From positions 2,108,001-2,172,000 of the forward strand of contig CM097884.1 in assembly GCA_044892505.1 (NCBI GenBank): DNA of 64,000 nucleotides. The letters are read 5' to 3'. Position numbers and translations under genes: made by a program. Below the pieces are notes generated by a model. It had not been told where the DNA came from, did no database searches, and was given only the letters and a program-made list of their open reading frames with translations. Numbering within the stretch: position 1 is the stretch's first letter; each line of letters opens with the position of its first letter. This stretch comes from Schmidtea nova (Eukaryota). This document shows positions 5,684 to 58,446 of this stretch, piece after piece.

Positions 5684-5688
5684 AGATG

Positions 5689-5749
5689 TGTGCCTGCATC
5701 AGCTCAATCTTCTGCGAATCCCTCTAATGAGACTGATGCAGAAAGCACA
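5689..5749 (+). promoter_or_regulatory. Stem-loop directly 3' of the ORF1 TGA; candidate readthrough stimulator
   Basis: TGTGC/GCACA, CTGCATCAG/CTGATGCAG and CTCA/TGAG pairings; also at 14400, 23374, 31928, 40062, 50313, 58446. Confidence 0.7.
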
Positions 5750-14394: not shown

Positions 14395-14400
14395 AGATGT

Positions 14401-20728: not shown

Positions 20729-23368
20729 ATGCCTCAATCACTTGCTGCTCTGTCAACTGCTGCTGATGTGTTGACTCAGTCTATTGAAAATCAGTCAACT
20801 GTGACGAAGCATTGTGCATTGGAAAACATTGTTAAATGTCAAATTTCCAACTTGCAATGTTTTCAGTCTTTTTTGGATAACTTTTTTCAATTGCATTGTG
20901 GAAATCGTTCTTCTGCATCAGTTCTTTCTGATGCTAATGCAAATCAACGGAGTTCTTCCTTCGATCAAGGATCAAAAAATTCTCAAGGACAATCTGAGAA
21001 CATGCCAATTTCTTATCCTGATATAGAGAATAAATTTCCTAACTCAAAGGATTTATTGATTGTCAAGCGCCTGGATTCATTGGAGGCTCTATTTTTGAAC
21101 ATGGCTGAAAAGGTAGATTATTTGGTTTCTTGTTTTAATGGCTCTGTAGATAATTTATCAGATTTTCGTAAAATAAATGAAAATATTTTAAATAATTATC
21201 TTTTTAATAAAAATAAAGTTCTTGATATAAAAGATAATATAAATGTAAATAATATATGTTCTAATAAATTAAATACTTTGGATTCTTCTGAAAATAATAG
21301 TGTAAATAAAACAAATATTTTATCAGATGTATATAATAATAAGATCCTTAATTCGAATAGTAAATTTTCTAATAATTCTCCTGAAGATAAATTTAAAAAT
21401 GTAAATATTTCAAGAGATAATGCTTCAATTGATTTAAATAACGCGAAAATTATTCCAACTGAAAACCTAGAAATAATTATCAAAAATAATAAAAAATCCG
21501 TTAAAATCATTGAACCTAGTAAAACAAATAAAAAGAAAATTGATAAATTTGAATTTAAAAGCCTGGTTCGTATTTTAACGAAAAGAGAACGCCAGCAAAT
21601 CTTGAATGCTTTTCCTGCCTTGATTCAAATGATTAAAAAGAAGGAATCGCAAAATAAATATATTGAAATAAATAAATTTCTTTCTGGTAAAGAATGTAAT
21701 GTTAATATCCTAAATGTAAATAATTTTGAATATTTCTTTTATAGGAATTTCAATATTTGTGTGTCCTTAAAATTGAATGAGGCTTCTGTAATTTCATCAG
21801 CACCGAAACCCGTTGTTTCAAAAACTATTAAATTAATTGACCATAATATCGTCAAAATAGATTCCGAAATCCCTGACTTTGTTCAAGCTCCAATGTCAAT
21901 TCGAAAATTTCTATTCAATCTTTCGGATGATCTTTCAAACACTGTTTCCATCAAGGATGATAAACATAGGGGAAATAAAATAAATAGCATTCTTACTTCG
22001 ATGAAACAAAAACAACAACTGCCAGATTATTTAATAAAATCTAATATTAAATACGAAAATGGCGAGTTTTTATTATTAGATTTAACTAACACAGATGTCA
22101 AATTGAAAGACGATAATAATTTATTAAAATCAAATTTTTCTGAACTTACTAGAAGTCAGATTAAAAATCTTTACAATTCATATCCTTCTCTTAAGGAAGT
22201 TTGTTTCGTTGAAAATCTAGAAACAAGATCCTCATCAGTTAGTAAAATGATTGACTCTTTAAAAATTAATAAAGAATTTCCAAAAAATATAATTTATAAA
22301 GAGGGTAAATTTTATCAATCTGATAAAAAACTAATTTCTCCCAGTAGTTCTCCTGACATAATGTTCAACCTTGGTCTGTTTGATTTGGCTAGTATGAGTA
22401 AAAAAGATAGTGAGTTAAAATTTATCTTAGAGAAGACTGGTTGTGACTTTAAAATAGTTGAAATAATATTCTACCTCAACTATTTGGGTTTGACTCGATC
22501 TTTGGATTTTAGCAAAAATCAAATTTATTCTGATTATGTAAGGAATTACATCTGTAATTGCGGCTTAATAAACTCACTCTGTAGTATTGCTGATGTTGAT
22601 TCACTTTCACCTGAGGATTTTGAGGGTTGGGCGACCGAAATTGTTCAGAAAATCCCAGTTTCTTCCTATTACTTCAATAGCTGTCACGAAAAGCTTTTAA
22701 AGTTGAAACAATGGGACATTTCAACTAAAATCAAAAAAATCCATAACGTTATTTCACCTGAAATAATTTCTTATTTAAATAAATTTCTTGACTCTGTAGA
22801 CGTAAAATTTCCAGCCAAATCTCAACAAAATAATATTTTAATTAAATTAATGAAAGCTATCAATGACATTAAAATTGTTGATGACATACACGGAAATAAA
22901 GCAAAACGACTTGTTTACTTTTTGCTGAGAGACGCCAAGATATATTTGAATAAAAATCAGCGATTTAGATTATTTGAATCGAGCAATAAATATTGCACTT
23001 CAGAAATGGGACAAATAATTTCCGTAATAATTGAGAACCTCAACAATGTGAGTGACAATGAAATTATTACTCCTGCAAGCACAATTGAAGAAAAGCTAAT
23101 GGAAAAAATTTGTGATCCTGAACCTATTGTTTTGATTGAAGAAAAAAGTTGCTTAAGATGCAACAATATCATTGACAATTGCATTCTAGTTAGAGATGGA
23201 ACAAACATCAACATCTGTGAAAGTTGCATATTTGATGCAATCTCTTCTGCGAAGCCGATTACCGAAGCTCCTCATTCAGATATAGAAGAAGATATAGAAA
23301 TAATTAGCAAGAAATCTTGTCCAAAAACCAGGAAAACAGACAAGAAAACATCAACAAAAGCGAAATGA
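20729..23368 (+). CDS. E4 ORF1 (intact)
   Basis: Translation identical to E2 ORF1. Confidence 0.85.
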   Translation: MPQSLAALSTAADVLTQSIENQSTVTKHCALENIVKCQISNLQCFQSFLDNFFQLHCGNRSSASVLSDANANQRSSSFDQGSKNSQGQSENMPISYPDIENKFPNSKDLLIVKRLDSLEALFLNMAEKVDYLVSCFNGSVDNLSDFRKINENILNNYLFNKNKVLDIKDNINVNNICSNKLNTLDSSENNSVNKTNILSDVYNNKILNSNSKFSNNSPEDKFKNVNISRDNASIDLNNAKIIPTENLEIIIKNNKKSVKIIEPSKTNKKKIDKFEFKSLVRILTKRERQQILNAFPALIQMIKKKESQNKYIEINKFLSGKECNVNILNVNNFEYFFYRNFNICVSLKLNEASVISSAPKPVVSKTIKLIDHNIVKIDSEIPDFVQAPMSIRKFLFNLSDDLSNTVSIKDDKHRGNKINSILTSMKQKQQLPDYLIKSNIKYENGEFLLLDLTNTDVKLKDDNNLLKSNFSELTRSQIKNLYNSYPSLKEVCFVENLETRSSSVSKMIDSLKINKEFPKNIIYKEGKFYQSDKKLISPSSSPDIMFNLGLFDLASMSKKDSELKFILEKTGCDFKIVEIIFYLNYLGLTRSLDFSKNQIYSDYVRNYICNCGLINSLCSIADVDSLSPEDFEGWATEIVQKIPVSSYYFNSCHEKLLKLKQWDISTKIKKIHNVISPEIISYLNKFLDSVDVKFPAKSQQNNILIKLMKAINDIKIVDDIHGNKAKRLVYFLLRDAKIYLNKNQRFRLFESSNKYCTSEMGQIISVIIENLNNVSDNEIITPASTIEEKLMEKICDPEPIVLIEEKSCLRCNNIIDNCILVRDGTNINICESCIFDAISSAKPITEAPHSDIEEDIEIISKKSCPKTRKTDKKTSTKAK

Positions 23369-23374
23369 AGATGT

Positions 23375-26300
23375 GTGCCTGCATCAGCTCAATCTTCTGC
23401 GAATCCCTCTAATGAGACTGATGCAGAAAGCACATTAAAAAACAATCTTTCAAATATCGATGATCGTGATCCTGAAGTGTGGTTTTCTGATAATGATATT
23501 GATTGGTATCTAGAAAACCAAATTGACAATCCAAAGCATGGATACATTAAATGCTTTATAGTAAATATCATCTGTTCTAACATCACAGAAGATATTGTTA
23601 AAATTCCACCTTCTATTACCAATGCTGAAATTGTGTTTTGTCCACTTAATATTAACAATTCGCACTGGATTCTTTTTGTTTATTGTAAGAAAATGCTGTC
23701 TTCTTACTTTATTGACTCAATCTTTGCGAACAAACAAAAGCCAATCAATAAACAAATGGCTCAAAGAATTAATCTAAAACTGAATACATTTTTCAATCTA
23801 AATGTATCAGTTTCCCGTCATCCACACAAACATCTTGAATATCAGAATAACAGCTTTGACTGTGGCCCATTTACGTGTGCTTATGCTGTGATTATCAGTA
23901 AAGATTTGAACAGCTTTCCAAATGGGTTCATAGAGAAAATTCGTACCAGTGTGCATGAAAATCAAAATCGTATGCAAATAACCGAATCCACCTTATTCGC
24001 TGGTACTAACTCCAAGATGGACATGACCAAAATAAATATCAAGAAAGCTCTTGCAAAAAAGAAAGTTATCACCAACACCTCAGATATGACCAAAGTATTG
24101 AACACTCAAAAACCGTGTGTGTCATCAATAATTAGTAAATATTACGAAAGTAATTCTAAAATAACAGTCTTATCTGCTGAACTAACTTTAAACCTAATTG
24201 CACAAAATACCTCCTTCATAGCTGATAATGTCACTTTCAAGCAGTTCAAAGGAATCGATCATGTTATAAGCATCATTCCTAAATTTAACGATTGGTGTCT
24301 CTTTGTCTATTCGAATAAACTTGACAGGAGCTACATGTTCGACTTCAATTATCGAAACATTGATGAAAGGCTAATTGAAATTGGTGAAAAGATAACTGAA
24401 TATCTGAATCAATTCACTCTTGTTTCTAAAATAAAATTCACACCTCATCATAGAATTTCTCATCCAACATTTCATTCTTATGATGATCAATATTTTGCAA
24501 GTTCTTTTATTGTATTTTTTGAGAAACTTGTCTTTGAAAGAATACTTGACAATGATAAGGTTTATGACTCATTAAGTGCTTTAAAATATCAGTCTTGTAA
24601 AGATCTTTCTCCTAGCCTAAGTTTCATTAATGGTAAAATATCCGACAAAATTATTGAGGAATATTTTGCTAGCCTAAACTTATCGACCAAATATATTCTT
24701 CTAAACACAACAATGTGTAGTGCGCTTTCAGATGATTGCACTGAATACTTGAAAGACTTTGTAAACATTGAGTGCATGATGAAGGCCACTGTTATCTTTG
24801 TAATCATTTCTCCTCCAAGAGCCAACGACTTGCTCATGGTTATTGATTACGACGCTGATGAGCACTATTTATTAAGCCCAGTCACTAATGACTTGTTCGT
24901 TATGACTGAAGGATTCTGCTATAAATTACTAATTAAAATTAATGAGATTAGAGAGAGCACAGGACGTGCCTTGAAATCGCGTAATTGTCGACATGACGTT
25001 AAAGGTTCTGGCTTATTTAGTAGGTTATTAATCTGTGCCTTTATTAAATATTATGCATTTGACCGATCTCTAGAAAATATCAACCTACATGAAATTGGCA
25101 AAATTATCTACTCACTTGTGCCATTAGTTGATAAAAATGATAATGCTGAGGAAGAAAGACGACTAAAATCAAAAGCTGTAAACTCTTTAAAACTAAATTT
25201 AAAACAGCGAATAGAAAAAGCGAATAATCTTATAATTTCACTTGAACACGCCAGTATTGATGAAATCATAAGTGGCATTCTTTCAAATATTCCTCGTCTT
25301 AAAGATTTGAACACCGAACACATTCGTACACCATATTTAGGTACTAAAATAGAAAAAGCTAGGAAATTCAAAAATTCCACTGAATTTCTGTCAAACATGA
25401 AAAAGACTGTGTATAGGATTTTGGGTAACAACACAGAATCGATTGCACCTCCTTTCCAGGAAATTATTGACACTTTCAGTCATCCTGATACATTACCTAG
25501 AAATTGGGAAAACATCTTAAAATTTACAAAAACTTCTAAAACTAGTCTTGAATTAAATCCAATGACACCTAAAGAAATCCTGTCAAGTCTTGGCAAAGCT
25601 GACAACACTTCTCCAGGTCTTGATAATGTCTGTTATAAAGATCTTTTGCTATTAGACCCTGAATGCAAATTGTTAACTTTTCTTTACAATAAAATCCTAA
25701 AATTAGATATTATTCCCACAAGTTGGAAATCATTTAAAACTATACTGATTCCAAAACCAGATAAAAATGGCCAATATCATAAAATATCTTCTTGGCGACC
25801 AATTGCTTTATTATCTGTGATTTACAAAGTTTTCGCTTCAGTTTTGGCCAATCGCCTTAGTTTGTGGATAAGAAATAATTCCATGTTACATATTGGCCAA
25901 AAGGGTGGTTCAGAATACGAAGGATGTATTGAACACAACTCTATCCTTTCTGCTATCGTCGAACACTCAAAATATAGCACATCATCACCTTTAACGATAG
26001 CTTGGCTAGACATCAAAGATGCCTTTGGAAGTGTGCCACATGATTACATGTGGACACTATTAAAACACATAAATGTTAGTGATAGGTTTGTGAGCATTTT
26101 AAAACTGCTGTATACTGACACGAGCTCGTTCTATTGTTGCAATAAAATGCAGACACCAGACATTCCAATAAAGAAAGGTGTTAAACAAGGTTGTCCGATC
26201 TCAATGATATTGTTTGCAATAGCTATTAACCCAGTACTTGACGCTATTAATTTGTCAAACGTCAATCCTTTTATGATAGGAACGTCTCCGGTACAGGTGT

Positions 26301-27984: not shown

Positions 27985-28351
27985 AATTTATAAACATACA
28001 AATAATTACTTTTTTTCCTTTAAAACTGTAAATAAAAATTAAAGTAAATATTTTGTAAAGTAATTTTAAATAAAAATTTTTTTTTTTTTCTCTAAATCTG
28101 ATAAATTGTCTCTGAGAGTTGTTGGAGTAAGAGACCAAATTGTCTGCGATGCTTGTTATATAATTTAGACCTCTCAAATACTGAAAAAAGCAGTCGCAAA
28201 GCTGGATGACGAAATCCAAAGATACAGAAAAACTCCTGCAGATAGAACAATTATATATATATTTGTTATGTGATTGTTTGAGGACTAATCCATGTTGATT
28301 AGATCATCTGTACAAAAATATTCAAATTTGTTATATTTAATAAATGTTTTA

Positions 28352-28405
28352 TATGATACTCGCTTAGGGTGCGAGTGGTCCCGGGTTCAAATCCCGGCTG
28401 AGCCC
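28352..28405 (+). pseudogene. trnP: 3' half of tRNA-Pro interrupted by E4
   Basis: tRNA nt 19-72. Confidence 0.95.
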
Positions 28406-28757
28406 TTTATTTTTTACAAAACGATACAAATTTCAAATTCGACTTTCGACGAAATTATCATCGGTTATTTATCGAATGAATATCGGGAAAAAGAGAAAAG
28501 CGTAAAATTCAAAATATAAAGACAACAACATGAAGAATTGACGAGAATACAAGTTTAATCAAATACAAGGTTCGATTGAGTTTGTGATGAAAGAAAACGA
28601 AAATTGGGAAATGGGAATTAAGATTAAAAAAATCTATTACAACAAAAAGAGGACATTTGTTGAATTGAATAATTGAAAAATCACGTGACAAAACATGAAA
28701 TGGATGATGATTTATTGAAAATAATTAAGACTGTCAACTTTTGATGAATTGACATGA

Positions 28758-28829
28758 GGCTCAGTGGTCTAGGGGTATGATACTCGCTTAGGGTGCGAGT
28801 GGTCCCGGGTTCAAATCCCGGCTGAGCCC
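28758..28829 (+). tRNA. trnP: tRNA-Pro(AGG), intact
   Basis: Identical cloverleaf. Confidence 0.97.
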
Positions 28830-29181
28830 TTTATTTTTTACAAAACGATACAAATTTCAAATTCGACTTTCGACGAAATTATCATCGGTTATTTATCGAA
28901 TGAATATCGGGAAAAAGAGAAAAGCGTAAAATTCAAAATATAAAGACAACAACATGAAGAATTGACGAGAATACAAGTTTAATCAAATACAAGGTTCGAT
29001 TGAGTTTGTGATGAAAGAAAACGAAAATTGGGAAATGGGAATTAAGATTAAAAAAATCTATTACAACAAAAAGAGGACATTTGTTGAATTGAATAATTGA
29101 AAAATCACGTGACAAAACATGAAATGGATGATGATTTATTGAAAATAATTAAGACGGTCAACTTTTGATGAATTGACATGA

Positions 29182-29202
29182 GGCTCAGTGGTCTAGGGGT
29201 AT
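29182..29202 (+). pseudogene. trnP: 5' half of tRNA-Pro interrupted by E5
   Basis: tRNA nt 1-21. Confidence 0.95.
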
Positions 29203-29282
29203 AATTTCGTAGGAAAAGAAAGACTGATTTTGAATTTAAAATTATAGATTACTGAATAATTGAATTGCGAAAGATGAAAAAC

Positions 29283-31922
29283 ATGCCTCAATCACTTGCT
29301 GCTCTGTCAACTGCTGCTGATGTGTTGACTCAGTCTATTGAAAATCAGTCAACTGTGACGAAGCATTGTGCATTGGAAAACATTGTTAAATGTCAAATTT
29401 CCAACTTGCAATGTTTTCAGTCTTTTTTGGATAACTTTTTTCAATTGCATTGTGGAAATCGTTCTTCTGCATCAGTTCTTTCTGATGCTAATGCAAATCA
29501 ACGGAGTTCTTCCTTCGATCAAGGATCAAAAAATTCTCAAGGACAATCTGAGAACATGCCAATTTCTTATCCTGATATTGAGAATAAATTTCCTAACTCA
29601 AAGGATTTATTGATTGTCAAGCGCCTGGATTCATTGGAGGCTCTATTTTTGAACATGGCTGAAAAGGTAGATTATTTGGTTTCTTGTTTTAATGGCTCTG
29701 TTGATAGTTTGTCAGATTTTCCTAAAATAATTGAAAATAATTTAAATAATAATCTTTTTAATAAAAATAAAGTTATTGATTTAAAAGATAATGTAAATGT
29801 AAATAATATATGTTCTAATAAATTAAATACTTTGGATTCTTCCGAAACTAATACTGTAAATAAAACAAATATTTTATCTGATGTATATAATAATAAGATC
29901 CTTAATTCGAATAGTAAATTTTCTAATAATTCTCCTGAAGATAAATTTAAAAATGTAAATATTTCAAGAGATAATGCTTTAATTGATTTAAATAACGCGA
30001 AAATTATTCCAACTGAAAACCTAGAAATAATTATCAAAAATAATAAAAAATCCGTTAAAATCATTGAACCTAGTAAAACAAATAAAAAGAAAATTGATAA
30101 ATTTGAATTTAAAAGCCTGGTTCGTATTTTAACGAAAAGAGAACGCCAGCAAATCTTGAGTGCTTTTCCTGCCTTGATCCAAATGATTAAAAAGAAGGAA
30201 TCGCAAAATAAATATATTGAAATAAATAAATTTCTTTCTGGTAAAGAATGTAATGTTAATATCCTAAATGTAAATAATTTTGAATATTTCTTTTATAGGA
30301 ATTTCAATATTTGTGTGTCCTTAAAATTGAATGAGGCTTCTGTAATTTCATCAGCACCGAAACCCGTTGTTTCAAAAACTATTAAATTAATTGACCATAA
30401 TATCGTCAAAATAGATTCTGAAATCGCTGACTTTGTTCAAGCTCCAATGTCAATTCGAAAATTTCTATTCAATCTTTCGGATGATCTTTCAAACACTGTT
30501 TCCATCAAGGATGATAAACATAGGGGAAATAAAATAAATAGCATTCTTACTTCGATGAAACAAAAACAACAACTGCCAGATTATTTAATAAAATCTAATA
30601 TTAAATACGAAAATGGCGAGTTTTTATTATTAGATTTAACTAACACAGATGTCAAATTGAAAGACGATAATAATTTAATAAGATCGAGTTTTTCTGAACT
30701 TACTAGAAGTCAGATTAGGAATCTTTACAATTCATATCCTTCTCTTAAGGAAGTTTGTTTCGTTGAAAATCTAGAAACAAGATCCCCATCAGTTAGTAAA
30801 ATGATTGACTCTTTAAAAATTAATAATGAATTTCCAAAAAATATAATTTATAAAGAGGGTAAATTTTATCAATCTGATAAAAAACTAATTTCTCCCAGTA
30901 GTTCTCCTGACATAATGTTCAACCTTGGTCTGTTTGATTTGGCTAGTATGAGTAAAAAAGATTGTGAGTTAAAATTCATCTTAGAGAAGACTGGTTGTGA
31001 CTTTAAAATAGTTGAAATAATATTCTACCTCAACTATTTGGGTTTGACTCGATCTTTGGATTTTTGCAAAAATCAAATTTATTCTGATTATGTAAGGAAT
31101 TACATCTGTAATTGCGGCTTAATAAACTCACTCTGTAGTATTGCTGATGTTGATTCGCTTTCACCTGAGGATTTTGAGGGTTGGGCGACCGAAATTGTTC
31201 AGAAAATCCCAGTTTCTTCCTATTACTTCAGTAGCTGTCAGGAAAAGCTTTTAAAGTTGAAACAATGGGACATTTCAACTGAAATCAAAAAAATCCATAA
31301 CGTTATTTCACCTGAAATAATTTCTTATTTAAATAAATTTCTTGACTCTGTAGACGTAAAATTTCCAGCTAAATCTCAACAAAATAATATTTTAATTAAA
31401 TTAATGAAAGCTATCAATGACATTAAAATTGTTGATGACATACACGGAAATAAAGCAAAACGACTTGTTTACTTTTTGCTGAGAGACGCCAAGATATATT
31501 TGAATAAAAATCAGCGATTTAGATTATTTGAATCGAGCAATAAATATTGCACTTCAGAAATGGGGAAATTAATTTTAGTGATAATTGAGAACCTCAACAA
31601 AGTTACTGACAATGAAATTATTACTCTTACAAGCACAGTTGAAGAAAAGCCAATTGAAAAAATTTGTGATCCTGAACCTATTGTTTTGATTGAAGAAACA
31701 AGTTGCTTAAGATGCAACAATATCATTGACAATTGCATTCTAGTTAGAGATGGAACAAACATCAACATCTGTGAAAGTTGCATATTTGATGCAATCTCTT
31801 CTGCGAAGCCGATTACCGAAGCTCCTCATTCAGATATAGAAGAAGATATAGAAATAATTAGTAAGAAATCTTGTCCAAAAACCAGAAAAACAGACAAGAA
31901 AACATCAACAAAAGCGAAATGA
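29283..31922 (+). CDS. E5 ORF1 (intact)
   Basis: Open frame homologous to E2 ORF1. Confidence 0.87.
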   Translation: MPQSLAALSTAADVLTQSIENQSTVTKHCALENIVKCQISNLQCFQSFLDNFFQLHCGNRSSASVLSDANANQRSSSFDQGSKNSQGQSENMPISYPDIENKFPNSKDLLIVKRLDSLEALFLNMAEKVDYLVSCFNGSVDSLSDFPKIIENNLNNNLFNKNKVIDLKDNVNVNNICSNKLNTLDSSETNTVNKTNILSDVYNNKILNSNSKFSNNSPEDKFKNVNISRDNALIDLNNAKIIPTENLEIIIKNNKKSVKIIEPSKTNKKKIDKFEFKSLVRILTKRERQQILSAFPALIQMIKKKESQNKYIEINKFLSGKECNVNILNVNNFEYFFYRNFNICVSLKLNEASVISSAPKPVVSKTIKLIDHNIVKIDSEIADFVQAPMSIRKFLFNLSDDLSNTVSIKDDKHRGNKINSILTSMKQKQQLPDYLIKSNIKYENGEFLLLDLTNTDVKLKDDNNLIRSSFSELTRSQIRNLYNSYPSLKEVCFVENLETRSPSVSKMIDSLKINNEFPKNIIYKEGKFYQSDKKLISPSSSPDIMFNLGLFDLASMSKKDCELKFILEKTGCDFKIVEIIFYLNYLGLTRSLDFCKNQIYSDYVRNYICNCGLINSLCSIADVDSLSPEDFEGWATEIVQKIPVSSYYFSSCQEKLLKLKQWDISTEIKKIHNVISPEIISYLNKFLDSVDVKFPAKSQQNNILIKLMKAINDIKIVDDIHGNKAKRLVYFLLRDAKIYLNKNQRFRLFESSNKYCTSEMGKLILVIIENLNKVTDNEIITLTSTVEEKPIEKICDPEPIVLIEETSCLRCNNIIDNCILVRDGTNINICESCIFDAISSAKPITEAPHSDIEEDIEIISKKSCPKTRKTDKKTSTKAK

Positions 31923-31928
31923 AGATGT

Positions 31929-34900
31929 GTGCCTGCATCAGCTCAATCTTCTGCGAATCCCTCTAATGAGACTGATGCAGAAAGCACATTAAAAAATAAT
32001 CTTTCAAATATCGATGATCGTGATCCTGAAGTGTGGTTTTCTGATAATGATATTGATTGGTATCTAGAAAACCACATTGACAATTCAAAGCATGGATACA
32101 TTAAATGCTTTATAGTAAATATAATCTGTTCTAACATCACAGAAGATATTGTTAAAATTCCACTTTCTATTACCAATGCTGAAATTGTGTTTTGTCCACT
32201 TAATATTAACAATTCGCACTGGATTCTTTTTGTTTATTGTAAGAAAATGCTGTCTTCTTACTTTATTGACCCAATCTTTGCGAACAAACAAAAGTCAATC
32301 AATAAACAAATGGCTCAAAGAATTAATCTAAAACTGAATACATTTTTCAATCTAAATGTATCAGTTTCCCGTCATCCACACAAACATCTTGAATATCAGA
32401 ATAACAGCTTTGACTGTGGCCCATTTACGTGTGCTTATGCTGTGATTATCAGTAAAGATTTGAACAGCTTTCCAAATGGGTTCATAGAGAAAATTCGTAC
32501 CAGTGTGCATGAAAATCAAAATCGTATGCAAATAACCGAATCCACCTTATTTGCTGGTACTAATTCCAAGATGGACTTGACCAAAATAAATATCAAGAAA
32601 GCTCTTGCAAAAAAGAAAGTTATCACCAACACTTCAGATATGACCAAAGTATTGAACACTCAAAAACCGTGTGTGTCATCAATAATTAGTAAATATTACG
32701 AAAGTAATTCTAAAATAACAGTATTATCTGCTGAACTAACTTTAAACCTAATTGCACAAAATACCTCCTTCATAGCTGATAATGTCACTTTCAAGCAGTT
32801 CAAAGGAATCGATCATGTTATAAGCATCATTCCTAAATTTAACGATTGGTGTCTCTTTGTCTATTCGATTAAACTTGACAGGAGCTACATGTTCGACTTC
32901 AATTATCGAAACATTGATGAAAGGCTAATTGAAATTGGTGAAAAGATAACTGAATATCTGAATCAATTCACTCTTGTTTCTAAAATAAAATTCACACCTC
33001 ATCATAGAATTTCTCATCCAACATTTCATTCTTATGATGATCAATATTTTGCAAGTTCTTTTATTGTATTTTTTGAGAAACTTGTCTTTGAAAGAATACT
33101 GGACAATGATAAGGTTTATGACTCATTAAGTGATTTGAAATATCAGTCTTGTAAAGATCTTTCTCCTAGCCTAAGTTTCGTTAATGGTAAAATATCCGAC
33201 AAAATTATTGAGGAATATTTTGCTAGCCTAAACTTATCGACCAAATATATTCTTCTAAACACAACAATGTGTAGTGCGCTTTCAGATGATTGCACTGAAT
33301 ACTTGAAAGACTTTGTAAACATGGAGTGCATGATGAAGGCCACTGTTATCTTTGTAATCATTTCTCCTCCAAGAGCCCACGACTTGCTCATGGTTATTGA
33401 TTACGACGCTGATGAGCACTATTTATTAAGCCCAGTCACTAATGACTTGTTCGTTATGACTGAAGGATTCTGCTATAAACTACTAATTAAAATTAATGAG
33501 ATTAGAGAGAGCACAGGACGTGCTTTGAAATCGCGTAATTGTCGACATGACGTTAAAGGTTCTGGCTTATTTAGTAGGTTATTAATCTGTGCCTTTATTA
33601 AATATTATGCATTTGACCGATCTCTAGAAAATATCAACCTACATGAAATTGGCAAAATTATCTACTCACTTGTGCCATTAGTTGATAAAAATGATAATGC
33701 TGAGGAAGAAAGACGACTAAAATCAAAAGCTGTAAACTCTTTAAAACTAAATTTAAAACAGCGAATAGAAAAAGCGAATTATCTTATTATTTCATTTGAA
33801 CACGCCAGTATTGATGAAATCATAAGTGGCATTCTTTCAAATATTCCTCGCCTTAAAGATTTGAACACCGAACACATTCGTACACCATATTTAGGTACTA
33901 AAATAGAAAAAGCTAGGAAATTCAAAAATTCCACTGAATTTCTGTCAAACATGAAAAAGACTGTGTATAGGATTTTGGGTAACAACACAGAATCGATTGC
34001 ACCTCCTTTCCAGGAAATTATTGACACTTTCAGTCATCCTGATACATTACCTAGAAATTGGGAAAACATCTTAAAGTTTACAAAAACTTCTAAAACTAGT
34101 CTTGAATTAAATCCAATGACACCTAAAGAAATCCTGTCAAGTCTTGGCAAAGCTGACAACACTTCTCCAGGTCTTGATAATGTCTGTTATAAAGATCTTT
34201 TGCTATTAGACCCTGAATGTAAATTGTTAACTTTTCTTTACAATAAAATCCTAAAATTAGATATTATTCCCACAAGTTGGAAATCATTTAAAACTATACT
34301 GATTCCAAAACCAGATAAAAATGGCCAATATCATAAAATATCTTCTTGGCGACCAATTGCTTTATTATCTGTGATTTACAAAGTTTTCGCTTCAGTTTTG
34401 GCCAATCGCCTTAGTTTGTGGATAAGAAATAATTCCATGTTACATATTGGCCAAAAGGGTGGTTCAGAATACGAAGGATGTATTGAACACAACTCTATCC
34501 TTTCTGCTATCGTCGAACACTCAAAATATAGCACATCATCACCTTTAACGATAGCTTGGCTAGACATCAAAGATGCCTTTGGAAGTGTGCCACATGATTA
34601 CATGTGGACACTATTAAAACACATAAATGTTAGTGATAGGTTTGTGAGCATTTTAAAACTGCTCTATACTGACACGAGCTCGTTCTATTGTTGCAATAAA
34701 ATGCAGACACCAGACATTCCAATAAAGAAAGGTGTTAAACAAGGTTGTCCGATCTCAATGATATTGTTTGCAATAGCTATTAACCCAGTACTTGACGCTA
34801 TTAATTTGTCAAACGTCAATCCTTTTATGATAGGAACGTCTCCGGTACAGGTGTTGGCTTATGCGGATGATATCGCACTTATCGCGACTAATACCTCTGA

Positions 34901-36539
34901 TCTTCAAAAACTCATAGACGTTGCTGTAAATACCGCCAAAACAATTGCATTTGAATATCGTCCAGAAAAGTGCGCTTATATGCAATATCCTAAAATAGAA
35001 ACTGTAAGCGAGATCTCTGTCAACCATATACTCATCAAAAAGATTGCAACAAATGAATTTTACCAATACTTGGGAGTACCAATAGGTGACAATAATGATC
35101 AAAGTCCCTATGAAATTGTTAGCAAAGTAATTGAAGACACAAAGAAAATAGCAAATTCCGATCTTTACGGCTGGCAAAAACTTAAAGCGTATAAGGTCTT
35201 TCTGCACTCTCGTTTGATCTTTCCATTTAGAACTAGGGAAATCAAAACAAGTTCTTTGACTGATTCTAGTAAAAATTCAAAAATCAATGTAAATAATACG
35301 AGTATCTTGAGAAGTCAGTTTAGAAAAATATTGAACTTGCCACATTACTCTGAAATTAGCTATTTCTATAATTCTACTGAAAATGGCGGTGCAGGTTGCA
35401 TAGACTTACTTGACGAATATCATACACAGACGATTGTTTACTTTTTCCGTCTCCTAACATCAACGTGCGAATATTCGAAAAAGATAAACACTGACTCGTT
35501 GTTATTTGTCACAAGACCCAGACTCGGAATCAAAAATCCAGTTCTTAAACAAAGTTTAGAATGGATAAATGGAAAGGATAGTAAGAAAAATCACAGCGGT
35601 TGCAAAACCCGATTTTATCGACTGCGATCATCTATTGCTTACTTTGCAAAAGTCCACAACATTAAACTGTTATTCGAAACAGTCAAAAATAATCCTTCGA
35701 TTCGAATAACCACTACACTTACAGGAACACGCATATTATTACCGACATTAAGAAAAGCACTGTCAATGATTCTTCATTCAGCTCTTCAAGACTCATATCT
35801 TGAAAAATGGGAAAAAAGCAATCACAATAATCTGCTTATATCTGCGATTAAACTTTGTCCACTTGTTAACAAACTTATTTTCCGCAGTGACTTGACTGAA
35901 TTTGAATGGAGATTCGTCCATCGAGCTAGAACAAATACACTTTCGACATTTGCAAAACCACATAAAACCGGTGAAAATCGTCTTTGTCGTAGATGTAAGG
36001 TTGAAGACGAAACTATCCTACACGTTCTTCAAACCTGTAAAATGAACAAATCTCTAGCAACTAATCGACATAACGCTTGCTTAGAAAAAATAAAAAACGA
36101 GTTGAAAAATCCAAACTTGTTAGTTGTTGCGGACCATAAATGTTCTCTTGTACCAACATCATCTGAGCGCGTTGATTTAATAATAACCAATAATGAGAAA
36201 AAGACGATATTATTGGTAGACATGAAATGTCCAATTGATTCTTTGCCCAACTTTGACTTGGCTGATAAAATGAATATTGAAAAATATGAAAAACTGAGAT
36301 CCGAAATTAAACTAGCCAAGCCCGATTATAAAGTTGAGTTGTTTACTTGCATCATAGGCTCTTTAGGTTCCATTGAAGTAAAGACTCCTGATCTTCTAGT
36401 TAAAATGGGCGTAAAAGAAAATAATGTTAAACGTCTGATGAAAGAGTGTGCAATAAGCAATATTGCGCACTCGGCCAAAATTTGGTTCTTTCACACCAAT
36501 GGCTTTCTACCAGATGATACAAGACAAACGTGTAAATAA
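31929..36539 (+). CDS. E5 ORF2: Ulp1-like x3, RT, CCHC, RLE (in frame with ORF1, no AUG at the start)
   Basis: Motifs as in E3; the GTG start is the track's choice. Confidence 0.93.
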   Translation: MPASAQSSANPSNETDAESTLKNNLSNIDDRDPEVWFSDNDIDWYLENHIDNSKHGYIKCFIVNIICSNITEDIVKIPLSITNAEIVFCPLNINNSHWILFVYCKKMLSSYFIDPIFANKQKSINKQMAQRINLKLNTFFNLNVSVSRHPHKHLEYQNNSFDCGPFTCAYAVIISKDLNSFPNGFIEKIRTSVHENQNRMQITESTLFAGTNSKMDLTKINIKKALAKKKVITNTSDMTKVLNTQKPCVSSIISKYYESNSKITVLSAELTLNLIAQNTSFIADNVTFKQFKGIDHVISIIPKFNDWCLFVYSIKLDRSYMFDFNYRNIDERLIEIGEKITEYLNQFTLVSKIKFTPHHRISHPTFHSYDDQYFASSFIVFFEKLVFERILDNDKVYDSLSDLKYQSCKDLSPSLSFVNGKISDKIIEEYFASLNLSTKYILLNTTMCSALSDDCTEYLKDFVNMECMMKATVIFVIISPPRAHDLLMVIDYDADEHYLLSPVTNDLFVMTEGFCYKLLIKINEIRESTGRALKSRNCRHDVKGSGLFSRLLICAFIKYYAFDRSLENINLHEIGKIIYSLVPLVDKNDNAEEERRLKSKAVNSLKLNLKQRIEKANYLIISFEHASIDEIISGILSNIPRLKDLNTEHIRTPYLGTKIEKARKFKNSTEFLSNMKKTVYRILGNNTESIAPPFQEIIDTFSHPDTLPRNWENILKFTKTSKTSLELNPMTPKEILSSLGKADNTSPGLDNVCYKDLLLLDPECKLLTFLYNKILKLDIIPTSWKSFKTILIPKPDKNGQYHKISSWRPIALLSVIYKVFASVLANRLSLWIRNNSMLHIGQKGGSEYEGCIEHNSILSAIVEHSKYSTSSPLTIAWLDIKDAFGSVPHDYMWTLLKHINVSDRFVSILKLLYTDTSSFYCCNKMQTPDIPIKKGVKQGCPISMILFAIAINPVLDAINLSNVNPFMIGTSPVQVLAYADDIALIATNTSDLQKLIDVAVNTAKTIAFEYRPEKCAYMQYPKIETVSEISVNHILIKKIATNEFYQYLGVPIGDNNDQSPYEIVSKVIEDTKKIANSDLYGWQKLKAYKVFLHSRLIFPFRTREIKTSSLTDSSKNSKINVNNTSILRSQFRKILNLPHYSEISYFYNSTENGGAGCIDLLDEYHTQTIVYFFRLLTSTCEYSKKINTDSLLFVTRPRLGIKNPVLKQSLEWINGKDSKKNHSGCKTRFYRLRSSIAYFAKVHNIKLLFETVKNNPSIRITTTLTGTRILLPTLRKALSMILHSALQDSYLEKWEKSNHNNLLISAIKLCPLVNKLIFRSDLTEFEWRFVHRARTNTLSTFAKPHKTGENRLCRRCKVEDETILHVLQTCKMNKSLATNRHNACLEKIKNELKNPNLLVVADHKCSLVPTSSERVDLIITNNEKKTILLVDMKCPIDSLPNFDLADKMNIEKYEKLRSEIKLAKPDYKVELFTCIIGSLGSIEVKTPDLLVKMGVKENNVKRLMKECAISNIAHSAKIWFFHTNGFLPDDTRQTCK

Positions 36540-36909
36540 AATTTATAAACATACAAATAATTACTTTTTTTTCCTTTAAAACTGTAAATAAAAATTAAAG
36601 TAAATATTTTGTAAAGTAATTTTAAATAAAATTTTTTTTTTCTTTTTCTCTAAATCTGATAAATTGTCTCTGAGAGTTGTTGGAGTAAGAGACCAAATTG
36701 TCTGCGATGCTTGTTATATAATTTAGACCTCTCAAATACTGAAGAAAGCAGTCGCAAAGCTGGATGACGAAATCCAAAGATACAGAAAAACTCCTGCAGA
36801 TAGAACAATTATATATATATTTGTTATGTGATTGTTTGAGGACTAATCCATGTTGATTAGATCATCTGTACAAAAATATTCAAATTTGTTATATTTAATA
36901 AATGTTTTA

Positions 36910-37416: not shown

Positions 37417-40056
37417 ATGCCTCAATCACTTGCTGCTCTGTCAACTGCTGCTGATGTGTTGACTCAGTCTATTGAAAATCAGTCAACTGTGACGAAGCAT
37501 TGTGCATTGGAAAACATTGTTAAATGTCAAATTTCCAACTTGCAATGTTTTCAGTCTTTTTTGGATAACTTTTTTCAATTGCATTGTGGAAATCGTTCTT
37601 CTGCATCAGTTCTTTCTGATGCTAATGCAAATCAACGGAGTTCTTCCTTCGATCAAGGATCAAAAAATTCTCAAGGACAATCTGAGAACATGCCAATTTC
37701 TTATCCTGATATTGAGAATAAATTTCCTAACTCAAAGGATTTATTGATTGTCAAGCGCCTGGATTCATTGGAGGCTCTATTTTTGAACATCGCTGAAAAG
37801 GTAGATTATTTGGTTTCTTGTTTTAATGGCTCTGTTGATAGTTTGTCAGATTTTCCTAAAATAATTGAAAATAATTTAAATAATAATCTTTTTAATAAAA
37901 ATAAAGTTATTGATTTAAAAGATAATGTAAATGTAAATAATATATGTTCTAATAAATTAAATACTTTGGATTCTTCCGAAACTAATACTGTAAATAAAAC
38001 AAATATTTTATCTGATGTATATAATAATAAGATCCTTAATTCGAATAGTAAATTTTCTAATAATTCTCCTGAAGATAAATTTAAAAATGTAAATATTTCA
38101 AGAGATAATGCTTTAATTGATTTAAATAACGCGAAAATTATTCCAACTGAAAACCTAGAAATAATTATCAAAAATAATAAAAAATCCGTTAAAATCATTG
38201 AACCTAGTAAAACAAATAAAAAGAAAATTGATAAATTTGAATTTAAAAGCCTGGTTCGTATTTTAACGAAAAGAGAACGCCAGCAAATCTTGAGTGCTTT
38301 TCCTGCCTTGATCCAAATGATTAAAAAGAAGGAATCGCAAAATAAATATATTGAAATAAATAAATTTCTTTCTGGTAAAGAATGTAATGTTAATATCCTA
38401 AATGTAAATAATTTTGAATATTTCTTTTATAGGAATTTCAATATTTGTGTGTCCTTAAAATTGAATGAGGCTTCTGTAATTTCATCAGCACCGAAACCCG
38501 TTGTTTCAAAAACTATTAAATTAATTGACCATAATATCGTCAAAATAGATTCTGAAATCGCTGACTTTGTTCAAGCTCCAATGTCAATTCGAAAATTTCT
38601 ATTCAATCTTTCGGATGATCTTTCAAACACTGTTTCCATCAAGGATGATAAACATAGGGGAAATAAAATAAATAGCATTCTTACTTCGATGAAACAAAAA
38701 CAACAACTGCCAGATTATTTAATAAAATCTAATATTAAATACGAAAATGGCGAGTTTTTATTATTAGATTTAACTAACACAGATGTCAAATTGAAAGACG
38801 ATAATAATTTAATAAGATCGAGTTTTTCTGAACTTACTAGAAGTCAGATTAGGAATCTTTACAATTCATATCCTTCTCTTAAGGAAGTTTGTTTCGTTGA
38901 AAATCTAGAAACAAGATCCCCATCAGTTAGTAAAATGATTGACTCTTTAAAAATTAATAATGAATTTCCAAAAAATATAATTTATAAAGAGGGTAAATTT
39001 TATCAATCTGATAAAAAACTAATTTCTCCCAGTAGTTCTCCTGACATAATGTTCAACCTTGGTCTGTTTGATTTGGCTAGTATGAGTAAAAAAGATTGTG
39101 AGTTAAAATTCATCTTAGAGAAGACTGGTTGTGACTTTAAAATAGTTGAAATAATATTCTACCTCAACTATTTGGGTTTGACTCGATCTTTGGATTTTTG
39201 CAAAAATCAAATTTATTCTGATTATGTAAGGAATTACATCTGTAATTGCGGCTTAATAAACTCACTCTGTAGTATTGCTGATGTTGATTCGCTTTCACCT
39301 GAGGATTTTGAGGGTTGGGCGACCGAAATTGTTCAGAAAATCCCAGTTTCTTCCTATTACTTCAGTAGCTGTCAGGAAAAGCTTTTAAAGTTGAAACAAT
39401 GGGACATTTCAACTGAAATCAAAAAAATCCATAACGTTATTTCACCTGAAATAATTTCTTATTTAAATAAATTTCTTGACTCTGTAGACGTAAAATTTCC
39501 AGCTAAATCTCAACAAAATAATATTTTAATTAAATTAATGAAAGCTATCAATGACATTAAAATTGTTGATGACATACACGGAAATAAAGCAAAACGACTT
39601 GTTTACTTTTTGCTGAGAGACGCCAAGATATATTTGAATAAAAATCAGCGATTTAGATTATTTGAATCGAGCAATAAATATTGCACTTCAGAAATGGGGA
39701 AATTAATTTTAGTGATAATTGAGAACCTCAACAAAGTTACTGACAATGAAATTATTACTCTTACAAGCACAGTTGAAGAAAAGCCAATTGAAAAAATTTG
39801 TGATCCTGAACCTATTGTTTTGATTGAAGAAACAAGTTGCTTAAGATGCAACAATATCATTGACAATTGCATTCTAGTTAGAGATGGAACAAACATCAAC
39901 ATCTGTGAAAGTTGCATATTTGATGCAATCTCTTCTGCGAAGCCGATTACCGAAGCTCCTCATTCAGATATAGAAGAAGATATAGAAATAATTAGTAAGA
40001 AATCTTGTCCAAAAACCAGAAAAACAGACAAGAAAACATCAACAAAAGCGAAATGA
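37417..40056 (+). CDS. E6 ORF1 (intact)
   Basis: Near-identical to E5 ORF1. Confidence 0.87.
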   Translation: MPQSLAALSTAADVLTQSIENQSTVTKHCALENIVKCQISNLQCFQSFLDNFFQLHCGNRSSASVLSDANANQRSSSFDQGSKNSQGQSENMPISYPDIENKFPNSKDLLIVKRLDSLEALFLNIAEKVDYLVSCFNGSVDSLSDFPKIIENNLNNNLFNKNKVIDLKDNVNVNNICSNKLNTLDSSETNTVNKTNILSDVYNNKILNSNSKFSNNSPEDKFKNVNISRDNALIDLNNAKIIPTENLEIIIKNNKKSVKIIEPSKTNKKKIDKFEFKSLVRILTKRERQQILSAFPALIQMIKKKESQNKYIEINKFLSGKECNVNILNVNNFEYFFYRNFNICVSLKLNEASVISSAPKPVVSKTIKLIDHNIVKIDSEIADFVQAPMSIRKFLFNLSDDLSNTVSIKDDKHRGNKINSILTSMKQKQQLPDYLIKSNIKYENGEFLLLDLTNTDVKLKDDNNLIRSSFSELTRSQIRNLYNSYPSLKEVCFVENLETRSPSVSKMIDSLKINNEFPKNIIYKEGKFYQSDKKLISPSSSPDIMFNLGLFDLASMSKKDCELKFILEKTGCDFKIVEIIFYLNYLGLTRSLDFCKNQIYSDYVRNYICNCGLINSLCSIADVDSLSPEDFEGWATEIVQKIPVSSYYFSSCQEKLLKLKQWDISTEIKKIHNVISPEIISYLNKFLDSVDVKFPAKSQQNNILIKLMKAINDIKIVDDIHGNKAKRLVYFLLRDAKIYLNKNQRFRLFESSNKYCTSEMGKLILVIIENLNKVTDNEIITLTSTVEEKPIEKICDPEPIVLIEETSCLRCNNIIDNCILVRDGTNINICESCIFDAISSAKPITEAPHSDIEEDIEIISKKSCPKTRKTDKKTSTKAK

Positions 40057-40062
40057 AGATGT

Positions 40063-43000
40063 GTGCCTGCATCAGCTCAATCTTCTGCGAATCCCTCTAA
40101 TGAGACTGATGCAGAAAGCACATTAAAAAATAATCTTTCAAATATCGATGATCGTGATCCTGAAGTGTGGTTTTCTGATAATGATATTGATTGGTATCTA
40201 GAAAACCACATTGACAATTCAAAGCATGGATACATTAAATGCTTTATAGTAAATATAATCTGTTCTAACATCACAGAAGATATTGTTAAAATTCCACTTT
40301 CTATTACCAATGCTGAAATTGTGTTTTGTCCACTTAATATTAACAATTCGCACTGGATTCTTTTTGTTTATTGTAAGAAAATGCTGTCTTCTTACTTTAT
40401 TGACCCAATCTTTGCGAACAAACAAAAGTCAATCAATAAACAAATGGCTCAAAGAATTAATCTAAAACTGAATACATTTTTCAATCTAAATGTATCAGTT
40501 TCCCGTCATCCACACAAACATCTTGAATATCAGAATAACAGCTTTGACTGTGGCCCATTTACGTGTGCTTATGCTGTGATTATCAGTAAAGATTTGAACA
40601 GCTTTCCAAATGGGTTCATAGAGAAAATTCGTACCAGTGTGCATGAAAATCAAAATCGTATGCAAATAACCGAATCCACCTTATTTGCTGGTACTAATTC
40701 CAAGATGGACTTGACCAAAATAAATATCAAGAAAGCTCTTGCAAAAAAGAAAGTTATCACCAACACTTCAGATATGACCAAAGTATTGAACACTCAAAAA
40801 CCGTGTGTGTCATCAATAATTAGTAAATATTACGAAAGTAATTCTAAAATAACAGTATTATCTGCTGAACTAACTTTAAACCTAATTGCACAAAATACCT
40901 CCTTCATAGCTGATAATGTCACTTTCAAGCAGTTCAAAGGAATCGATCATGTTATAAGCATCATTCCTAAATTTAACGATTGGTGTCTCTTTGTCTATTC
41001 GATTAAACTTGACAGGAGCTACATGTTCGACTTCAATTATCGAAACATTGATGAAAGGCTAATTGAAATTGGTGAAAAGATAACTGAATATCTGAATCAA
41101 TTCACTCTTGTTTCTAAAATAAAATTCACACCTCATCATAGAATTTCTCATCCAACATTTCATTCTTATGATGATCAATATTTTGCAAGTTCTTTTATTG
41201 TATTTTTTGAGAAACTTGTCTTTGAAAGAATACTGGACAATGATAAGGTTTATGACTCATTAAGTGATTTGAAATATCAGTCTTGTAAAGATCTTTCTCC
41301 TAGCCTAAGTTTCGTTAATGGTAAAATATCCGACAAAATTATTGAGGAATATTTTGCTAGCCTAAACTTATCGACCAAATATATTCTTCTAAACACAACA
41401 ATGTGTAGTGCGCTTTCAGATGATTGCACTGAATACTTGAAAGACTTTGTAAACATGGAGTGCATGATGAAGGCCACTGTTATCTTTGTAATCATTTCTC
41501 CTCCAAGAGCCCACGACTTGCTCATGGTTATTGATTACGACGCTGATGAGCACTATTTATTAAGCCCAGTCACTAATGACTTGTTCGTTATGACTGAAGG
41601 ATTCTGCTATAAACTACTAATTAAAATTAATGAGATTAGAGAGAGCACAGGACGTGCTTTGAAATCGCGTAATTGTCGACATGACGTTAAAGGTTCTGGC
41701 TTATTTAGTAGGTTATTAATCTGTGCCTTTATTAAATATTATGCATTTGACCGATCTCTAGAAAATATCAACCTACATGAAATTGGCAAAATTATCTACT
41801 CACTTGTGCCATTAGTTGATAAAAATGATAATGCTGAGGAAGAAAGACGACTAAAATCAAAAGCTGTAAACTCTTTAAAACTAAATTTAAAACAGCGAAT
41901 AGAAAAAGCGAATTATCTTATTATTTCATTTGAACACGCCAGTATTGATGAAATCATAAGTGGCATTCTTTCAAATATTCCTCGCCTTAAAGATTTGAAC
42001 ACCGAACACATTCGTACACCATATTTAGGTACTAAAATAGAAAAAGCTAGGAAATTCAAAAATTCCACTGAATTTCTGTCAAACATGAAAAAGACTGTGT
42101 ATAGGATTTTGGGTAACAACACAGAATCGATTGCACCTCCTTTCCAGGAAATTATTGACACTTTCAGTCATCCTGATACATTACCTAGAAATTGGGAAAA
42201 CATCTTAAAGTTTACAAAAACTTCTAAAACTAGTCTTGAATTAAATCCAATGACACCTAAAGAAATCCTGTCAAGTCTTGGCAAAGCTGACAACACTTCT
42301 CCAGGTCTTGATAATGTCTGTTATAAAGATCTTTTGCTATTAGACCCTGAATGTAAATTGTTAACTTTTCTTTACAATAAAATCCTAAAATTAGATATTA
42401 TTCCCACAAGTTGGAAATCATTTAAAACTATACTGATTCCAAAACCAGATAAAAATGGCCAATATCATAAAATATCTTCTTGGCGACCAATTGCTTTATT
42501 ATCTGTGATTTACAAAGTTTTCGCTTCAGTTTTGGCCAATCGCCTTAGTTTGTGGATAAGAAATAATTCCATGTTACATATTGGCCAAAAGGGTGGTTCA
42601 GAATACGAAGGATGTATTGAACACAACTCTATCCTTTCTGCTATCGTCGAACACTCAAAATATAGCACATCATCACCTTTAACGATAGCTTGGCTAGACA
42701 TCAAAGATGCCTTTGGAAGTGTGCCACATGATTACATGTGGACACTATTAAAACACATAAATGTTAGTGATAGGTTTGTGAGCATTTTAAAACTGCTCTA
42801 TACTGACACGAGCTCGTTCTATTGTTGCAATAAAATGCAGACACCAGACATTCCAATAAAGAAAGGTGTTAAACAAGGTTGTCCGATCTCAATGATATTG
42901 TTTGCAATAGCTATTAACCCAGTACTTGACGCTATTAATTTGTCAAACGTCAATCCTTTTATGATAGGAACGTCTCCGGTACAGGTGTTGGCTTATGCGG

Positions 43001-50307: not shown

Positions 50308-50313
50308 AGATGT

Positions 50314-58440: not shown

Positions 58441-58446
58441 AGATGT

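Follow-up and report, generated by a model that had tools for sequence, protein, structure and literature searches.

We have identified a candidate programmed stop-codon readthrough signal in a site-specific retrotransposon that lacks long terminal repeats (non-LTR) and is present in seven complete copies in a 64-kb stretch of Schmidtea nova DNA (contig CM097884.1, positions 2,108,001 to 2,172,000; hereafter the window). The element resembles a long interspersed nuclear element (LINE) and carries a restriction-like endonuclease (RLE) and an N-terminal Ulp1-like protease. Its two open reading frames (ORFs) lie in the same frame, a single in-frame UGA divides them, and a hairpin stands directly behind that UGA, an arrangement that is conserved, with covariation, across twelve lineages. 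From these comparative data, programmed UGA readthrough that yields a minor ORF1-protease-reverse transcriptase (RT)-endonuclease polyprotein is the probable means by which ORF2 is expressed. We also lean, with somewhat more reserve, towards the broader proposal that this LINE-like family sets its ORF1:ORF2 ratio by virus-type UGA readthrough and then would cut the polyprotein with a SUMO-protease-like domain, a convergent gag-pro-pol strategy.

The ORF1-ORF2 junction in the window

Copies of the element are designated E2 to E8, and copy E5, in which both ORFs are intact, is used here as the reference. Its principal features, in window coordinates, are as follows.

29203..36909, plus strand: complete copy E5, 7707 bp, in the D-arm of a tRNA-Pro(AGG) gene, both ORFs intact
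29274..31919, plus strand: ORF1, 882 amino acids (aa) from the first AUG
31920..31922, plus strand: in-frame UGA, the proposed readthrough codon, ending ORF1
31928..31988, plus strand: stem-loop 3' of the stop, its outer stem beginning 5 nt after the UGA
31923..36536, plus strand: ORF2, 1538 codons, its first AUG being codon 109
31998..32501, plus strand: Ulp1/SENP-like (Peptidase_C48) catalytic domain (Pfam PF02902, E 4e-8, residues 83-181)
34302..35081, plus strand: RT, ORF2 residues 794-1053 (Pfam RVT_1, E 4e-29)
35970..36422, plus strand: CCHC zinc knuckle and PD-(D/E)xK restriction-like endonuclease region, limits approximate, from motifs

The element thus runs from a 5' untranslated region (UTR) of ~70 nt through ORF1 (882 aa), one TGA and ORF2 (1538 codons) to a 3' UTR of ~367 nt. 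In E5, both ORFs occupy one frame and are parted by a single TGA, beyond which the frame is open from 31923 for 1538 codons, up to a TAA at 36537. The 18-mer that spans the junction, AAATGAAGATGTGTGCCT (AAA-TGA-AGA-TGT-GTG-CCT), has seven exact plus-strand matches in the window with 0 mismatches, compared with 0 expected; these start at 5678, 14389, 23363, 31917, 40051, 50302 and 58435.

The hairpin that follows the stop is built from an outer stem in which TGTGC (31928-31932) pairs with GCACA (31984-31988), a core 9-bp stem in which CTGCATCAG (31933-31941) pairs with CTGATGCAG (31972-31980), and a window-specific 4-bp extension in which CTCA (31942-31945) pairs with TGAG (31967-31970); an AAA bulge occupies 31981-31983 on its 3' side. 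The minimum free energy of positions 31917-31995 was predicted to be -26.2 kcal/mol (z -4.79), and 0 of 200 shuffled sequences folded as well. When 2544 sliding 75-nt windows of the element were folded (mean -9.1, sd 4.1), the hairpin ranked as the second most stable locus. RNAfold applied to the window sequence alone favors a slightly shifted outer stem, while the homologues keep the register given above. An ATGA in the window lies out of the ORF2 frame, opens an ORF of 15 codons and is missing from most relatives.

Several of these features had been described in an earlier interpretation of the window made without database searches (the sequence-only reading). The junction AAA TGA AGA TGT GTG CCT in all seven copies, ORF2 in the ORF1 frame behind one TGA, the arms and coordinates of the hairpin, and a lone synonymous change in E8 (AAT to AAC, where the stem meets the loop) were all recovered. 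That reading also placed a catalytic His ahead of the first Met of ORF2, which agrees with codons 99 and 109, respectively, when counted from the codon after the stop (97 and 107 from the GTG), and its polyprotein of ~2,420 aa matches a predicted size of 882 + 1 + 1538 = 2421 residues. Its use of the invariance among the seven copies as evidence was given no weight, because the copies are 98.7-100% identical in pairwise comparisons and E4 duplicates E2, so that invariance of the junction within the window carries no evolutionary information. The corresponding segments (UGA plus hairpin) of the other copies are listed below.

5681..5749, plus strand: copy E2, ORF2 frameshifted
14392..14460, plus strand: copy E3, ORF1 frameshifted
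23366..23434, plus strand: copy E4, identical to E2
40054..40122, plus strand: copy E6, an intact copy
50305..50373, plus strand: copy E7, early ORF1 stop
58438..58506, plus strand: copy E8, intact, with one synonymous T-to-C at the loop end of the stem

Conservation of the junction UGA among relatives

A protein search with ORF2 returned eight relatives, of which seven have 32-52% identity over most of the length and the eighth, P0008, covers 64% of the query. Eleven contigs that span the junction (L001-L007 and L009-L012) make up twelve lineages together with the window; L008, from which the N-terminal third of ORF2 is absent, gives no junction. Identity to the window descends to 22% over the first 250 aa of ORF2. 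No relative was found in Joint Genome Institute (JGI) metagenome contigs searched with the protease alignment, and a protein search with the most divergent ORF2 N-terminus, that of L007, returned only L007 itself.

ORF1 ends in a single in-frame TGA in 12/12 lineages, with ORF2 following in frame without a spacer, and TAA or TAG is found at this position in 0/12. Both of the ORFs that this stop parts are conserved. The TGA stands exactly three codons before a conserved Pro-Ala in every lineage, while the ORF1 tails are unalignable. Among the nine lineages in which the ORF2 terminator was read, it is TAA in five and TGA in four (AT-rich sequences); since ORF2 ends in TAA or TGA in the same elements, the junction stop is specifically UGA. 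Directly after the stop, seven lineages have C, three have U and two have A, and G occurs in none of the twelve. A UGACGG hexamer occurs in 4/12 lineages, CGU follows the UGA in one and CUA in none, and the window has AGA.

No relative with ORF2 out of frame or with a conserved AUG of its own was found among the twelve lineages. The first in-frame AUG of ORF2 falls anywhere from codon 64 to codon 283 by lineage and is not conserved, and between 1 and 13 AUGs in other frames come before it. Codon 3 of ORF2 (6 nt after the stop) is a GUG in eight of the twelve lineages, L005, L007, L011 and L012 being those without it. An overlapping stop-start of the SART1 type (UAAUG/AUGA) that could open ORF2 was not encountered, the ATGA of the window being out of frame and not conserved.

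Conservation and covariation of the hairpin

Folding and covariation analysis of homologues had been suggested by the sequence-only reading, and the results bear out its stem. A hairpin of -20 to -31 kcal/mol lies directly after the stop in all twelve lineages, and its conserved core stem of 9-13 bp starts 8-10 nt after the UGA in 12/12. In most lineages, a 3-nt bulge separates this core from an additional outer stem, GUGC/GCAC, which brings the base of the structure to ~5-7 nt after the stop. In the alignment designated A4, 83% of cells pair, compared with 17-37% when the 3' partners are slid. Seven base pairs have changed on both sides, a number reached by 0/500 shuffles in controls that ignore phylogeny. 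Examples of such compensatory changes are A-U to U-A in L005, U-A to C-G in five lineages, G-C to A-U in L009 and A-U to G-C in L006. The same 9-bp core was predicted independently by RNAalifold. In L007, the stem is again 9 bp and is of unrelated sequence (CCCAGCCCC paired with GGGGCTGGG), located 8 nt after the stop with its register shifted by 2 nt.

Synonymous sites within the hairpin are also constrained. In a small-sample comparison made without a phylogeny, codon identity at identical residues was 0.66-0.75 in both arms versus 0.434 across ORF2, with the 3' arm tying for the top codon-identity window of the whole of ORF2. The conserved Pro is encoded by CCT in 11/12 lineages versus a background of 32%, and the Ala by GCA in 9/11 versus 39%. 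A covariance model of the signal (R1) matched only junction sites in 138 kb (the window and the loci of the relatives), which shows only that there is no second copy elsewhere, because R1 was trained on the same sequences.

The protease encoded after the stop

From its N-terminus, ORF2 encodes the protease, two degenerate protease-like repeats, the RT, a CCHC motif and the restriction-like endonuclease. Positions 25-26 to 193 of a profile of the protease family can be aligned to the catalytic domains of SENP1 (2iyc) and Ulp1 (1euv) at E 2e-8, and W38, H99, D116, Q159 and C165 are invariant across eight aligned lineages. An invariant WF[ST]D motif, located at codons 37-44, is matched in the alignment to the WLND of SENP1 and Ulp1, within the catalytic domain, and lies upstream of the first in-frame ORF2 AUG in every lineage. 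A start at the first AUG would always drop this Trp motif, and would drop the catalytic His in 7/10 lineages. On these alignments, the predicted protease requires residues that are encoded before any in-frame AUG.

Ulp1/SENP enzymes cleave after Gly-Gly. A conserved L/x-G-G-G motif, which may be a self-cleavage site, occurs just past the protease in most relatives (L001-L003, L006, L007, L010 and L012); the window has A-G-T at this position (~32560-32600, ORF2 residues ~213-226). The two degenerate Ulp1-like repeats, at window 32700-33800 (ORF2 residues ~260-360 and ~415-620), are without catalytic residues. For example, NDWCLFVY replaces SHWILFVY, and weak profile matches are seen at equal positions in most lineages.

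The endonuclease was recognised by motif only, from CRRC...HVLQTC and RVDL...VDMKC in the C-terminal region of ORF2, and no family model matched there. The same region aligns with the C-terminus of an RLE-type LINE protein, P0023. This 2388-aa single-ORF protein was considered as a possible natural ORF1-ORF2 fusion and was rejected, given that it shares the RT-RLE part only and has no homology to ORF1 or to the protease. In P0024, a distant RLE-type LINE protein, the RT is preceded by a ubiquitin C-terminal hydrolase (PF00443/PF13423); different deubiquitinase- or deSUMOylase-like protease families have therefore been recruited by such elements.

The ORF1 protein

An AlphaFold2 (AF2) model of ORF1 has a mostly helical conserved core (aa ~385-785) at a predicted local distance difference test score (pLDDT) of 80-90, with an overall pLDDT of 58. 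Both ends are disordered, namely a 280-aa N-terminus and a basic C-tail that bears a CxxC...CxxC motif. ORF1 matched no Pfam family and no PDB sequence, and a Foldseek search of the PDB with the model returned nothing below E 0.1. An exhaustive search of 1.84 billion representative sequences recovered 17 homologues of ORF1, whose length does not exceed 960 aa. Gene callers end an ORF at UGA, so this limit shows only that no variant with a sense codon at the junction is on record.

Proposed mechanism and alternative explanations

We propose that translation would begin at the ORF1 AUG and that most ribosomes would terminate at the UGA, thereby releasing the ORF1 protein. A minority would decode the UGA by means of a near-cognate tRNA, because the stable hairpin would lie at the mRNA entry channel when the UGA occupies the A site. 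These ribosomes would stay in frame and produce the 2421-residue ORF1-protease-RT-endonuclease polyprotein, which would probably be cut by the Ulp1/SENP-like cysteine protease encoded directly after the stop. The stop, its frame and the covarying hairpin are observed, whereas the readthrough event, its stimulation by the hairpin, the ratio of the products and their proteolytic processing are what we infer from them. UGA readthrough with a 3' stem-loop was also the central proposal of the sequence-only reading, and all of the comparative signatures in the twelve lineages are consistent with it.

Several considerations weigh against this model. The whole case is a comparative one, and counts such as 12/12 are not independent trials, given that the sequences share ancestry, which the shuffle controls leave out of account. 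The window's own stop context is UGA-A and not UGA-C, and UGA-A is not the leakiest context. The codon-3 GUG found in 8/12 lineages could in principle serve reinitiation. No clear cleavage site or G-G-G-like motif was found between ORF1 and the protease. Lastly, the LTR element Tca2 of Candida albicans has a gag-UGA-pol junction with a predicted pseudoknot and gave no readthrough in a Saccharomyces cerevisiae reporter (PMC2194720); layout alone is therefore no proof of mechanism. Tca2 shares with the present element an in-frame UGA followed by a predicted structure, but no broad comparative support has been reported for it, while the signal described here is conserved and covaries across twelve lineages.

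If ORF2 were instead translated by termination and reinitiation, the hairpin would hold the 40S subunit for a restart at a non-AUG codon such as the codon-3 GUG, and a separate ORF2 protein would result. SART1 is known to need a structure downstream of its stop-start, and ORF2 of L1 is thought to start unconventionally (PMC5972666, PMC5009743); the fixed distance from stop to hairpin would suit such a mechanism equally well. We nevertheless regard reinitiation as unlikely, as an overlapping or nearby in-frame AUG is lacking (the first 63 codons contain none in any lineage), and four lineages are without the GUG, which forms part of the outer stem where present. Moreover, reinitiation requires neither the same frame (12/12) nor UGA (12/12) nor a C after the stop (7/12). 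It is also possible that the hairpin performs some other job, such as packaging or protein binding, a ribosome pause that serves cis-preference, or RNA stability, and that ORF2 is made by internal entry or from another RNA, which would stem from an internal promoter or from processing of the transcript. The junction of Tca2 contains a cryptic promoter (PMC2194720), and the ORF1 protein and the hairpin could interact. This explanation strikes us as quite improbable, since on a transcript that began at the junction, translation from the first in-frame AUG would miss the Trp motif and, for most lineages, also the catalytic His, which would give a truncated protease, and a complete protease would need an AUG-less start. 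Nor would another function of the hairpin explain why the stop is always UGA, why C tends to follow it, or why the stem is locked 8-10 nt away.

Recoding of the UGA as an amino acid would take one of two forms, with UGA specifying selenocysteine and the hairpin acting as a redefinition element, or with UGA being a sense codon in the host. In bacteria, and for some selenoprotein mRNAs of eukaryotes, hairpins adjoining UGA do aid the insertion of selenocysteine. Here, an Rfam scan of the element, its 367-nt 3' UTR included, and of its flanks returned only tRNA at E values up to 1, with no selenocysteine insertion sequence (SECIS), ribozyme or other family, and the UGA sits in a linker between the ORFs and not in an active site. 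A sense-codon UGA is at odds with the fact that there is no other in-frame TGA in ~2420 codons of any lineage, and TGA ends ORF2 in four of the nine lineages read, so UGA normally terminates. We consider recoding of either kind highly improbable. The last alternative holds that the stop is a recent inactivating mutation of a single-ORF element and that the copies are dead. NeSL and Utopia elements generally encode one protein (PMC4640811), which would suit this idea, but the same TGA at the same position in twelve lineages, with identity down to 22% and with ORFs that are otherwise open, rules out a recent nonsense mutation and leaves this explanation with a negligible probability.

Comparison with known readthrough signals and LINEs

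Programmed UGA readthrough at this junction would most closely resemble the type II signals of RNA viruses. These consist of UGA-CGG or UGA-CUA, a 7-12 nt spacer and a stem of at least 10-12 bp with compensatory changes; their loop is little conserved, synonymous conservation forms two peaks, and the signals have been validated experimentally (Firth et al. 2011, PMC3159437). Examples are alphavirus nsP3/nsP4, coltivirus VP9/VP9' and the replicases of tobra-, peclu-, furo- and pomoviruses (PMC3159437), and the hexamer UGACGG is that of Venezuelan equine encephalitis virus (VEEV), coltiviruses and virgaviruses (PMC3159437, PMC13517186). For VEEV and Colorado tick fever virus, the stem is required, and readthrough falls below 1% without it (PMC13517186). 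The element shares with these systems a UGA, a spacer of 8-10 nt, a covarying stem of 9-13 bp, a variable loop and constrained arms, and its downstream product is likewise a polymerase, which would be made in the lower amount; the UGA is followed by C in 7/12 lineages, four of which have CGG. It differs in that its host is a cellular non-LTR retrotransposon, its loop is 20-45 nt versus ~100-150 nt, and the window has UGA-AGA.

The sequence-only reading had also likened the junction to gag-pol of murine leukemia virus (MuLV), and this likeness was upheld in function and in the placement of the protease directly after the stop, whereas the stop, the RNA structure and the class of protease differ. 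Both systems have a structural ORF, a single in-frame stop, a protease and an RT, and in MuLV an RNA structure ~8 nt downstream stimulates readthrough and the polyprotein is processed by its own protease, a step that would have its counterpart here. MuLV uses UAG-G with an H-type pseudoknot, as opposed to UGA with a plain bulged hairpin here (a pseudoknot was not searched for), and an aspartic protease, as opposed to a clan CE Ulp1/SENP-like cysteine protease; the present element has no LTRs and no integrase. Judged by these sequence features, the type II signal of alphaviruses, coltiviruses and virgaviruses is a closer match than MuLV, to whose class the element does not belong.

The RT, the C-terminal CCHC and PD-(D/E)xK motifs and the N-terminal Ulp1-like protease give the element a NeSL-type architecture. 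Ulp1-like proteases are carried by nematode NeSL families and by Utopia-1_TSP (Kojima and Jurka, PMC4640811), and the Repbase element NeSL-1_TV is described in one sentence of the same paper as specific for tRNA-Pro genes (PMC4640811). The element is probably NeSL-1_TV or a close relative, as judged from the description of NeSL-1_TV and not from its sequence. With the NeSL clade (Caenorhabditis elegans NeSL-1, Utopia-1_TSP and NeSL-1_TV) it has in common a protease before the RT, a zinc knuckle and endonuclease, and a multicopy small-RNA gene as target; it is unlike them in having an 882-aa ORF1 that is set apart by a conserved UGA. As in SART1 of Bombyx and human L1, a LINE ORF2 must be expressed from a bicistronic RNA, and SART1 also uses a structure just 3' of the ORF1 stop. 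SART1 has an overlapping UAAUG and L1 a 63-nt spacer, neither of which needs the same frame or a set stop, whereas the present element has neither an AUG nor a spacer, keeps ORF2 in the frame of ORF1 and has UGA as its stop in every lineage.

How ORF2 of LINEs is translated from a bicistronic RNA is still debated, with reinitiation in L1, UAAUG coupling in SART1, frameshifts and 2A peptides having been proposed. Reviews name frameshifting, bypassing, reinitiation and 2A peptides for elements of this kind (PMC5009743, PMC5972666). In our full-text search of the literature, no account was encountered of a non-LTR retrotransposon whose ORF1 and ORF2 are linked by stop-codon readthrough; this search extended neither to Repbase notes nor to the paper that first described NeSL-1, and an earlier notice is possible. 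As far as that search reached, this may be the first programmed stop-codon readthrough found for a non-LTR retrotransposon. If true, readthrough backed by covariation would add a further solution to the problem of ORF2 expression, one so far known from RNA viruses, retroviruses and some LTR elements, and would suggest an independent origin of the type II signal, UGA(-CGG) plus a stem-loop, outside viruses. It would also help to explain why NeSL-type elements carry their puzzling Ulp1-like protease, which would process an ORF1-ORF2 fusion, and the "GTG-start" ORF2 called by gene finders on the contigs of relatives would be an artefact. The signal is compact (~70 nt), comes in twelve natural variants with built-in compensatory changes, and is present in intact copies.

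Element copies, the tRNA-Pro array and insertion sites

Rfam, ARAGORN and Tandem Repeats Finder (TRF) show that the window consists of tRNA-Pro(AGG) genes repeated in tandem as a 424-bp unit. Inserted in this array are seven complete copies of the element, with lengths of 7703-7707 bp, and an eighth copy represented by its tail.

1698-2963, 19383-20648, 28352-29202 and 45041-47587, together with all element flanks: units of the tRNA-Pro(AGG) array

The boundaries of E5 were defined as the points where the array unit breaks off and picks up again. All seven copies interrupt the tRNA-Pro(AGG) gene at one position, in the D-arm at about nt 18-21, with a target duplication of 3 bp (TAT). The 5' flank ends in GGCTCAGTGGTCTAGGGGTAT and the tRNA gene resumes in the 3' flank with TATGATACTCGC; in E5, the 5' flank ends ...GGGGTAT and the 3' flank begins TATGATACTC. 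RLE-type LINEs insert by target-primed reverse transcription, and the same is presumed for this element. Neighboring array units can both carry copies, with E5 and E6, and likewise E7 and E8, lying one unit apart.

Both ORFs are intact in E5, E6 and E8 only. ORF2 is frameshifted near codon 1159 in E2 and E4, ORF1 is frameshifted in E3, and E7 has an early stop in ORF1. E2 (2964-10666) and E4 (20649-28351) are 100% identical, with a shared frameshift and matching flanking tRNA units, and they arose by a segmental duplication of ~17.7 kb (or by unequal crossing-over) and not by separate insertions. Between E2 and the next tRNA unit lies a stretch of 240 N (10899-11138).

A second very stable structure (-27 kcal/mol in 75 nt) lies at 36433-36515, just before the ORF2 stop. 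No conservation of this second hairpin was found in the seven relatives checked; it may be specific to the lineage, possibly as a 3'-end recognition element.

No tRNA-Pro sequence was found in the flanks of the homologue contigs, which either use other targets or end within the element. In L002 (6990-7005), the same 3' terminus, TTGTTATATTTAATAAAT.TTTTA, is followed by AGTGGTAGAGC, the D-arm of a different tRNA, and the 3' flank of L010 (7370-7440) contains a GGTTCGAATC T-arm. L006 (1-115) lies just downstream of the 3' part of a signal recognition particle (SRP) RNA gene (Metazoa_SRP model, 60.5 bits, clipped at the contig end), and L004 (1-140 and 7540-8223) lies in a satellite of ~200 bp.

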